DNA from: Gracilinanus agilis
Lineage: Eukaryota
Length of the DNA stretch: 64,000 nt
NCBI RefSeq assembly: GCF_016433145.1
Contig: NC_058136.1
Location: 54,727,857-54,791,856 of the forward strand
Direction: 5' to 3'
Shown: one piece after another, positions 3,001 through 6,000 of the stretch
How the letters are laid out: each line of letters begins with the position of its first letter
How positions within the stretch are numbered: position 1 is the stretch's first letter
The notes under the pieces: model-generated
The model's database searches: none
Told to the model about the DNA's origin: nothing
The model's input: the letters and a program-made list of their open reading frames with translations, nothing else
Program-made: the position numbers and the translations under genes

Positions 3001-6000
3001 ACCTTTTTTTGTGAAATATTAAGGCTTAAATCTCCTTCTCAACTTCCTTTATCACCATAGTCATAAGAATCTACAAGATGCACAGAAATCTTCTTCTAAA
3101 TTTCCTCTCAGAAATCTTCCCCTTAATCTCATTTTCCCATCACCACATCACCCTCTCTGATCTCTATGGAAGCTTAACTCCCAATATCATTGAGTTTGGT
3201 CTTAGTGACTCTCCTTTCCACAAATAAATTCTCTTCGGGAGAGTATTTCCCCTCCTACCATTTCTCCAAATGTTTTTTCAGCACCCTGTTTTCTACACTC
3301 TTATTAGTATCCTTAAGTCTGGGTTCTCAAAGGCTCATTGAAAACAGGGCCTGTGTTTCCTGTTTTTGAGCATTCTCCATAATAATTACTTCATACCTTG
3401 TTCTGTATTTAGTAGGTGCTCAAGAGATGCTTGTGGAGCATTCAATCTGAACCCAGAATGAAGACCAATATCCTATCCTCATCCCATCCTTTTTCTCGAT
3501 TGCTCTCAACTCCTGGCAATATGTGGAGAACAAGTGAGGAATTGGGGTCCTCAGACCTTCAACTCCTTTCCTGCTTCATTTGTGCTTTTAGCGCTCTCTC
3601 TCTCTCTCTCTCTCTCTCTCTCTCTCTCTCTCTCTCTCTCTCTCTCTCTCTCTCTCTCCCAGATAACCTCTTGCTGTCATGACTAGTGTTCTTTAGGATT
3701 CTTCTTGAGATCATCTGTGTGCATCCAAATTACAGGCAAGTGAGTTCATCCTTTCCTCCATGCAAACAATCTGGAATGTGTTCATGCACCCAAACAGCCT
3801 CATCTGGGTTGAGCTCTCAAATGCGAATGACTCACTCCTTTGGGGCTTTGGCCAGACCAATCAGCTGGTACTTTGTTGACTTGGCCTAGTTTGGCTACAG
3901 TAAGGCACCTACACTGAATGAGCTTCACAGGAAGGAGAAGACTTCTCCAACTTGCCTGAAAGCCAGCTGCAAACCCATCTCCTCCTCTCAGAAAGCCATC
4001 CTATCCCAAGAAGGAACTGTTTTCTAAGGCCATAAAGCAGTTTCTTGTGCTGGTGCCATTGAAGAGAGGATCCCTCCAAAGTTTTATGAAAATCTGAGCT
4101 GAGATTTTTTTAAAAGAGGAATTTAACAAGCAAACCAGGAAATACTTGTTCACTTAAATCATACAGTCAAATCAACAGTGTATGTACTACCTGTTTTTTA
4201 AAAAGTGACCAAAGTAAGTTAGAAGGAACTCAATTAAACCTACCTACTGAAGTCAAACTTTAAAAAAAGTTAATTTCTATGTGAAAAGAAAGGAGCAACC
4301 AAAAAACAATGGCTCACAGCTACAGGTAAACACATCCAAAGCCTTCCCAGCCGGCAGTCACTTGGGCAGCAGTTCTCTGCTTTGGCAGCAGTCAGGCATT
4401 TGCAAGTTTAGTATGTGCATCTCCAATTCTACTACACCTACCTACAATCTGTATTGGGAAAGGGTATGGAAGGGAGTGAATATGACTTCTCCACACCAGA
4501 CATTCTAATGCTGGCAGGAGAAAAGAGGCTGCAGCCAGTCCCCTTAGAGAGCACTGCCCAGACTGCAGCAGCAGCAGCAGCGCTGGCAGTGGCGGCACAT
4601 CCAGCATACCAGCAGAACTCCCTGACATTCATTCTGTTCAGGGACCCTGAGGTCAGAAGCACTTCACAACCCCAGAAGATGAAAGATGTGGACCCAAGAA
4701 CGAGATGTACCTTGGACTCTCTGAAGTTTGGGTTTTGCAAATGCCATCGGCAAATTTAGAGGAATGTAATGTTCGTGATTACAAACTGTTTGCAGAAATT
4801 CAAACTTGTACTCTGCCAGAACCTGGGTAGGAAAAAAATGAGTTAGATGTCTACATTAATGCAACTTGGTATATAGACTTATAACTCTGAATGGTGAGCA
4901 TTCATTTTTGCAACAGAATTGTTCCAAGAAATAAAAACACAATGATCCTTGAGAGGTCAGCTGGTGGGGCCCTTGCTTCAGGCAGAATACAATAAAGGAA
5001 ATAAACATTTTGTTCTCCTGAAATAGCATGGGCCACTTTGTCTCATGCTATATTATCTCCCATGCTCACAATCATGATTTGCTCTCATCTTTGCTGGAAG
5101 TTTGCACTGAAGGAATTTAAATACCTAAAGGAGGACCACGTGATCCTTTGACAATATGAAAAGAACAGTAAGAAAAAGTTTTGCTCCTTGACCTAAGTTT
5201 CAAAGAAGGTACTGGACCATATGTACAGACAAGATAGGCCCCTGTGTTGGGTAGTCCTGATCTGTCTGAGGGCTCAGTGCCCAAAGAAGTAAAGCTAGGA
5301 CTCTTGCCTATTTCCCTTTTCTTTTCTTAGGGCAATAAATTATCTTAAAAACTCTTTGCTAGCTTTAGTTGTTTTTCCAGATTTTTATAAATTTCAAATC
5401 ATGCTAAACTTTACAAAGCTAAATGATGGAGAAGCCACTGTCATTATTAACTATTTATTTCTTCTTCATGTACACAAAACGTAAAAGAAACTTTTTTATG
5501 TCCACTTCCAACAGAAAGCAAATGCTTTGTCTATCTGTATATATCTGCAACTCACCTTGGGATCCTTGGGACTGAATCCAGACATGTAGTCATTGATCAG
5601 GTTGAAAATGAATCCTCTGTCCATCAATGTCAGACAGCGCTATGGAAACCAAAAACAAAGTTTCTGTTAGGAGCACAATCCTCATAACCCATCAGGCATG
5701 GCAGTGTTCCACCAAAGATTGCTTAATTCCTTTTTGTTGATGAAGAAACAAAAATGCACAGAAATGACCAGCATTCTGGAAGTCCAAGACTTGGGACTTA
5801 GGGCCTACCCCTGCAGTTTTCACAAGCTGTCCAATATGGGCGCTTCTGACCATGTCTACAAAGCCCACACAATGAAGGGTGGTGTTGGCAAATGACAGAT
5901 GAAAGCATAGCCTTCTTCAGTGGTCTCCCTGACTTTGGCCTTATCTCCTGCCAATACACTGACACATTATTCTTCCTCAAACAGCATTTTGATCAGGTAA

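Follow-up and report, generated by a model that had tools for sequence, protein, structure and literature searches.

What is a segment of 33 nucleotides (nt), flanked by good splice signals and carrying a stop codon, doing between two conserved coding exons of DOCK11? The segment lies in the marsupial Gracilinanus agilis, within a 64 kb stretch of DNA (the window, by which we mean the whole of the stretch analysed) in which the gene runs on the minus strand. An earlier note on this DNA had proposed that a coding microexon has either turned into a switch for nonsense-mediated decay (NMD) or is decaying. Comparison with other amniotes bears out the orthology and the decay, with three lesions and no useful open frame, and leaves the switch unlikely. 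The segment is probably a dead microexon. DOCK11 has an ancient and strongly conserved alternative exon of 39 nt, of which this is the degenerate ortholog.

The assignment of the gene to DOCK11, already made in the earlier note, holds both on matches to named proteins and on the product of the window itself (P0293, 2093 residues), with which the window's exons agree at 100%, covering its residues ~202–1206. P0293 is 98.9% identical to P0191 of a close relative, 94.5–95.8% identical to the DOCK11 proteins of Dromiciops, koala, bilby, wallaby and devil, and 88% identical to those of mouse and of platypus alike. A region-restricted protein word search, for which a long anole DOCK11 model from the representative search served as the query (P0012, 1553 residues), returned 737 matches, and the best 120 of these 737 are named DOCK11 across amniotes. 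The downstream exon on its own recovered seven short fragments of the open reading frame (ORF) type from other vertebrates. Pfam scanning of P0293 gave the domain order DOCK_C-D_N, PH, DOCK-C2 (DHR-1) and DHR-2 lobes A–C, with DHR-2 at residues 1621–2048. Judged by this order and by its nearest named proteins, P0293 belongs in the DOCK-D (zizimin) subfamily, as DOCK11. The exon junction that holds the segment corresponds to residue 1115/1116, in a helical region between DHR-1 and DHR-2; no Pfam family was assigned to the three exons flanking it, a region that sits between domains.

In placentals, Australian marsupials and monotremes, annotated DOCK11 isoforms have a cassette of 13 residues, DFFSFAVDRLTSV, at exactly this junction. 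The earlier note had placed a 13-residue cassette there in predicted human and placental isoforms, and it is real. Among placentals it is found in Mus caroli isoform X1 (P0172, representing a cluster of 1078 sequences) and in models from Macaca, Pan, Bos, Cricetulus and Panthera; among Australian marsupials in devil (P0276), koala (P0289), bilby (P0290), wallaby (P0282) and dunnart (P0277); and among monotremes in platypus (P0298) and echidna (P0295). The version in turtles and birds is DFFSFAVERFTSV, and squamate cassettes vary, one example being DFFSMVLERFTSV. With the junction located in every protein retrieved, the cassette was present there in 40+ annotated proteins. The same species also have isoforms that lack it, and the cassette is therefore an alternative exon. 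Its conservation is high: the insert is identical from platypus to primates, the residues F-A-V-D-R are invariant from monotremes to placentals, and the exon DNA of hamster and gull agrees at 35 of 39 positions (90%), synonymous sites included.

The product of G. agilis, P0293, has no cassette at this junction, and none was found there in the models of the close relative (P0189, P0190, P0191 and P0229). The last of these, a UniRef model, does insert GTSRSY after ...KLQRVQ. This is a read-through of the donor into the intron, where the window reads GTSRSW; an artefact of gene modelling seems likelier here than a cassette.

To place the segment at the DNA level, the window was compared with one hamster contig (L001) and one gull contig (L006). 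An exon-ORF fragment (P0001) led to the Logan contigs L001–L005, which we assigned to hamster because their downstream exon encodes the peptide variant of Cricetulus griseus, distinct from that of apes. The intact 39-nt exon is present in hamster at L001:854–892 and in gull at L006:31935–31973 (Larus, GCA_013400295.1), and the two have in common the pyrimidine tract as well as the acceptor AATTAG/ and the donor TAG/GTAGGT (a slash marks the splice border). The window can be aligned to both over ~140 nt. Within this alignment, window positions 4258–4234 match the hamster microexon and its donor exactly over 25 nt (E = 8e-9), the sole significant match of the hamster exon region in the window. 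Both the homology and the position in the intron mark the 33-nt segment as the ortholog of the 39-nt DOCK11 alternative microexon. What the window no longer has is the ancestral acceptor AATTAG/ and the open 39-nt frame D-F-F-S-F-A-V-D/E-R-L/F-T-S-V. A second, intact copy of the cassette was not found in any frame of the whole window.

Three lesions separate the segment from its hamster and gull counterparts. The acceptor AATTAG/A has become AATTAAC, so that the AG is lost at 4271–4270. Between the T run and AAAG, 13 nt have gone, removing the codons for S-F-A-V-(D/E). Upstream, CATAT in hamster and CACGT in gull correspond to CATAG in the window, giving a new AG at 4278–4277. The last 14 exon bases, which encode L-T-S-V, and the donor are unaltered. 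The length of the segment follows from these changes (39 − 13 + 7 = 33 nt). We also counted private substitutions in a three-way comparison of window, hamster and gull over the conserved block, which comprises the exon with 45 nt before it and 30 nt after it. There are 13 in the window lineage, plus the deletion, and 5 in hamster, an excess that suggests relaxed constraint in the window lineage (Tajima-type chi-square ~3.6, p ~0.06).

The description of the segment in the earlier note, with a pyrimidine tract, a TAG acceptor, a 33-nt body, the donor AG/GTAGGT, a phase-1 intron and a TAA at 4260–4262, is correct in every statement about the sequence, read on the minus strand. The host intron is in phase 1 and lies between the exons 4822–4711 and 2688–2510. 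If the segment were spliced in from the new AG, the transcript would read G/AA ATT AAC TTT TTT TAA AGT TTG ACT TCA GTA G/AT, that is, E-I-N-F-F-stop-S-L-T-S-V-(D); this translation is conceptual only, with the phase bases G and AT added by script. Use of an internal AAG acceptor gives a 14-nt exon, for which the coordinates 4257–4244 proposed earlier were confirmed. The earlier statement that the stop lies upstream of DHR-2 also stands, given the junction at 1115/1116 and DHR-2 at 1621–2048.

Splice signals were scored with a crude position-weight matrix, whose frequencies are approximate. On this scale the new acceptor scores 10.4 and the donor 8.5, within the range of three real exons nearby. 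The ancestral acceptor scores 3.5 in hamster and 1.9 in gull, and the same site in the window −13.7. When we scanned the 64 kb for pairs 3–60 nt apart with an equal or better score, the minus strand had two and the plus strand one. The acceptor–donor pair is not beyond chance by its splice motifs alone. Because pairs of equal quality arise by chance in the window, the reality of the segment rests on its homology.

All frame-preserving AG..GT pairs around the segment were enumerated, and none is open except a trivial 3-nt exon reading TAG. An alternative open in-frame splice combination was thereby excluded, every other pair containing a stop. Judged from these reading frames, the relic has lost its coding capacity.

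These observations are best explained by the loss of the exon in this marsupial lineage. In other amniotes the exon adds 13 residues between the exon VLAEYKFEF...QRVQ and the exon DSNLE..., namely DFFSFAVDRLTSV in mammals and DFFSFAVERFTSV in birds and turtles. In the lineage of the window, the AG of the 3′ splice site has changed to AA, 13 internal bases have been deleted, and a T-to-G change 7 nt upstream has created a new AG beside the pyrimidine tract. The resulting 33 nt are a multiple of three, but their frame meets a TAA. Productive mRNA would have to skip the segment because the spliced-in frame runs into this stop, and only the cassette-less DOCK11 isoform would be possible. Since the gene is intact and conserved (98.9% identity to the relative), most transcripts must skip it. 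Were the relic still recognised, its stop would lie >20 exon junctions upstream of the last junction and removal of the transcript by NMD would be expected. We take it that any residual inclusion would be a remnant of unproductive splicing that is not under selection, and not an evolved switch.

Against this account of a dead exon stand several features of the segment that fit continued recognition by the splicing machinery, and possibly constraint. The donor is perfectly retained, the flanks can still be aligned to those of a placental, and the new AG outscores the weak ancestral acceptor (10.4 against 3.5 and 1.9). The length of 33 nt, a multiple of three, is a one-in-three coincidence under pure decay, and the excess of substitutions in the window lineage is only borderline. 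The skipping of the relic is deduced from gene models. A rival reading is that the microexon, once its coding capacity was gone, was kept or co-opted as a poison exon. Its inclusion, regulated by tissue and using the new strong AG with the old donor, would bring in the TAA and lower DOCK11 output by NMD, turning isoform regulation into dosage regulation. A frame-preserving segment with an in-frame TAA suits such a switch, as do a donor identical to those of hamster and gull, an acceptor that adjoins the pyrimidine tract with a crude score above the ancestral one, and the retention of flanking intron elements, the presumed drivers of inclusion in other species. Stops more than ~50 nt upstream of the last exon junction generally lead to NMD. 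The TAA at 4262–4260 sits far upstream of both DHR-2 and the last exon junction, at junction 1115/1116 of 2093 residues and with many exons downstream of it. All of these features are, however, equally expected of a recently killed exon, and such motif pairs occur about one to two times per 64 kb strand by chance. The conserved block has more, not fewer, private changes in the window lineage, and there were no junction reads or contigs for the segment, although the runs examined are not RNA of G. agilis. Runs X1 and X2, labelled organism A and presumed to be RNA, gave short unspliced contigs that are 90–95% alike to positions 2400–5700 and cross exon–intron borders, none of them over 4244–4276; they look like DNA or nascent, unspliced RNA of a related species rather than mRNA of the window's species. 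Contigs of these runs carry no splice joints (run X3 gave none) and contigs can be filtered out, so they speak neither for nor against expression. On balance, we consider a maintained poison exon unlikely.

The stop codon itself might also be questioned, as it arises at a T7/A3 homopolymer boundary, a context that is error-prone in some sequencing technologies. If T6A4 were the true or usual sequence, and the stop a base-call error or private polymorphism, the segment, whose length is 3n, would encode a shortened peptide, EINFFKSLTSV. The possibility of such an error had been raised earlier and was checked against a read-derived DNA contig of run X8, which spans 3668–5700 and agrees with T7A3; this run, labelled organism B with 98% of the sampled words, has a mean word depth of 13.8 and may be the assembly's own sample. 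Its only difference from the window in that span is at 3890. The earlier note had further held that a single T-to-A change would give an open peptide; as a way to a working coding microexon, this does not hold up. Even with K in place of the stop, EINFFKSLTSV would still not be the conserved cassette, because the ancestral acceptor AG and 13 internal bases are gone; the peptide is without F-A-V-D-R. Models of G. agilis and its relative have no insert either, apart from the unrelated GTSRSY artefact of P0229. A coding microexon hidden by a false stop is thus very improbable. Still less credit, so little that it can practically be set aside, goes to a pseudo-exon formed by chance from unrelated splice-like motifs in a long intron. 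By the crude matrix, pairs of equal quality do occur about one to two times per strand of the window, but a chance pair would explain neither that 25 nt match the hamster microexon and its donor exactly at a single, syntenic site between the same two exons, nor that an alignment of ~140 nt reaches both hamster and gull, and this candidate was rejected on these grounds. The dead microexon remains our preferred explanation.

Comparison with known systems helps to define what kind of element the relic is. Against the intact 39-nt DOCK11 cassette (RefSeq isoform X1), it has the same phase-1 intron, donor TAG/GTAGGT, pyrimidine tract, last 14 bases and alignable flanks; it differs in having no ancestral AG, in being 13 nt shorter inside, in having its sole nearby strong AG 7 nt upstream and a TAA in frame, and in the lack of any cassette-bearing model for G. 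agilis or the close relative. Ultraconserved, stop-carrying exons of SR-protein genes are poison exons that act in regulated unproductive splicing, that is, alternative splicing coupled to NMD. The relic resembles these in being short, with good splice signals and a premature stop far upstream of the last junction. Classical poison exons are, however, characterised by observed inclusion, a rise when NMD is blocked and usually a strongly conserved stop-bearing sequence, whereas the relic, as a candidate, has fresh lesions relative to its coding ancestor. The vertebrate microexon programme comprises exons of 3–51 nt with conserved flanking introns. The ancestral DOCK11 exon fits this programme well (39 nt, a weak acceptor away from the pyrimidine tract and conserved flanks), while its copy in the G. 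agilis window is non-coding.

A different mouse Dock11 cassette, of ~19 nt and near the 3′ end of the gene (mm chrX 36075916–36075934), is reported to be clock-regulated in beta cells (PMC7397853, supplement); it falls outside the window's part of the gene. A further paper, PMC10325915, concerns DOCK11 expression only. In our literature search on DOCK11 with "microexon", and on the cassette or its loss, we found no paper, and none that describes a function of the 13-residue insert.

The DOCK9-like proteins (MPFGKGRI...DLQLDYSLTDDFCRN) P0085 (1059 residues) and P0062 (183 residues) have inserts at the same exon junction. The insert of P0085 is 14 residues long, AFLSRSKETHAKCV, and also ends in V; that of P0062, at ~24 residues, resembles intron read-through. 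The DOCK9-like paralog may have an alternative cassette of its own in the corresponding intron.

The coordinates of the relic, its signals and the neighbouring exons are collected in the table.

Table. Features of the DOCK11 locus in the G. agilis window (positions in the window; / marks a splice border).
Feature	Position	Strand	Description
33-nt segment AAATTAACTTTTTTTAAAGTTTGACTTCAGTAG	4244..4276	−	Alternative DOCK11 microexon (39 nt in other species) in degenerate, orthologous form, with 7 nt that were once intron
Pyrimidine tract TTGCTCCTTTCTTTTCACAT	4279..4300	−	Precedes the relic; conservation seen in the alignments to hamster and gull
New acceptor AG	4277..4278	−	Ends the sequence preceding the segment, TTGCTCCTTTCTTTTCACATAG/; lineage-specific; follows the pyrimidine tract directly and precedes the ancestral acceptor by 7 nt; AT in hamster, GT in gull
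Ancestral acceptor position	4270..4271	−	AATTAG/A in hamster and gull; AA here (AATTAAC, 4275–4269)
13-nt deletion, approximate site	4261..4262	−	Relative to hamster and gull; exact placement ambiguous within the T and A runs
In-frame TAA	4260..4262	−	Reached in frame when splicing uses the new AG
Donor GTAGGT	4238..4243	−	TAG/GTAGGT identical in window, hamster and gull; GT at 4243–4242
Downstream intronic flank	4180..4237	−	Alignable to hamster; first ~30 nt also to gull
DOCK11 upstream exon	4711..4822	−	VLAEYKFEF...KLQRVQ (37 residues) + G; ends in phase 1; donor AAG/GTACAT; matches P0293 ~1078–1115; numbered exon 30 in the earlier note
DOCK11 downstream exon	2510..2688	−	(D)SNLE...TRYQHK; starts in phase 1; 100% identical to P0293 residues 1116–1175; numbered exon 31 in the earlier note
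DOCK11 coding exon	5556..5639	−	28 residues, ends in phase 0; from sequence and splice sites; identical in P0293, P0191 and related models

The introns contain a few other features. A perfect (CT)32 microsatellite at 3594–3658 lies in the same intron as the relic, and read-derived contigs break there. A short CAG/GCN-rich intron stretch at 4560–4597 attracts fragments from run X1 that belong to unrelated contigs of high depth (records 2 and 3); they are low-complexity cross-matches and hold no DOCK11 signal. Plus-strand ORFs at ~8100–9400 with text like the C-terminus of LINE-1 ORF2 probably represent an L1 fragment in a DOCK11 intron.

DOCK11 is a Cdc42 exchange factor with hematopoietic and other roles. 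The conservation of the cassette, with identity from platypus to primates and 90% agreement of the DNA between hamster and gull, implies that it has a function, and on the sequence comparisons the present case is one of lineage-specific death of a deeply conserved microexon. A lineage without the insert would amount to a natural knockout of that isoform alone, would show that viability does not depend on the insert in at least one lineage of mammals, and would offer a comparison point for the role of the insert in DOCK11 as a Cdc42 exchange factor. If the poison-exon reading were true, old tissue-specific inclusion signals would switch DOCK11 off through NMD where other amniotes gain an isoform with 13 further residues, a natural example in American opossums of isoform regulation turned into dosage regulation. 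Should the relic still be spliced, it would provide a dated example of a poison exon born from a coding exon. Otherwise this would be an ordinary exon death, useful chiefly for annotation, where no cassette isoform should be predicted for G. agilis.

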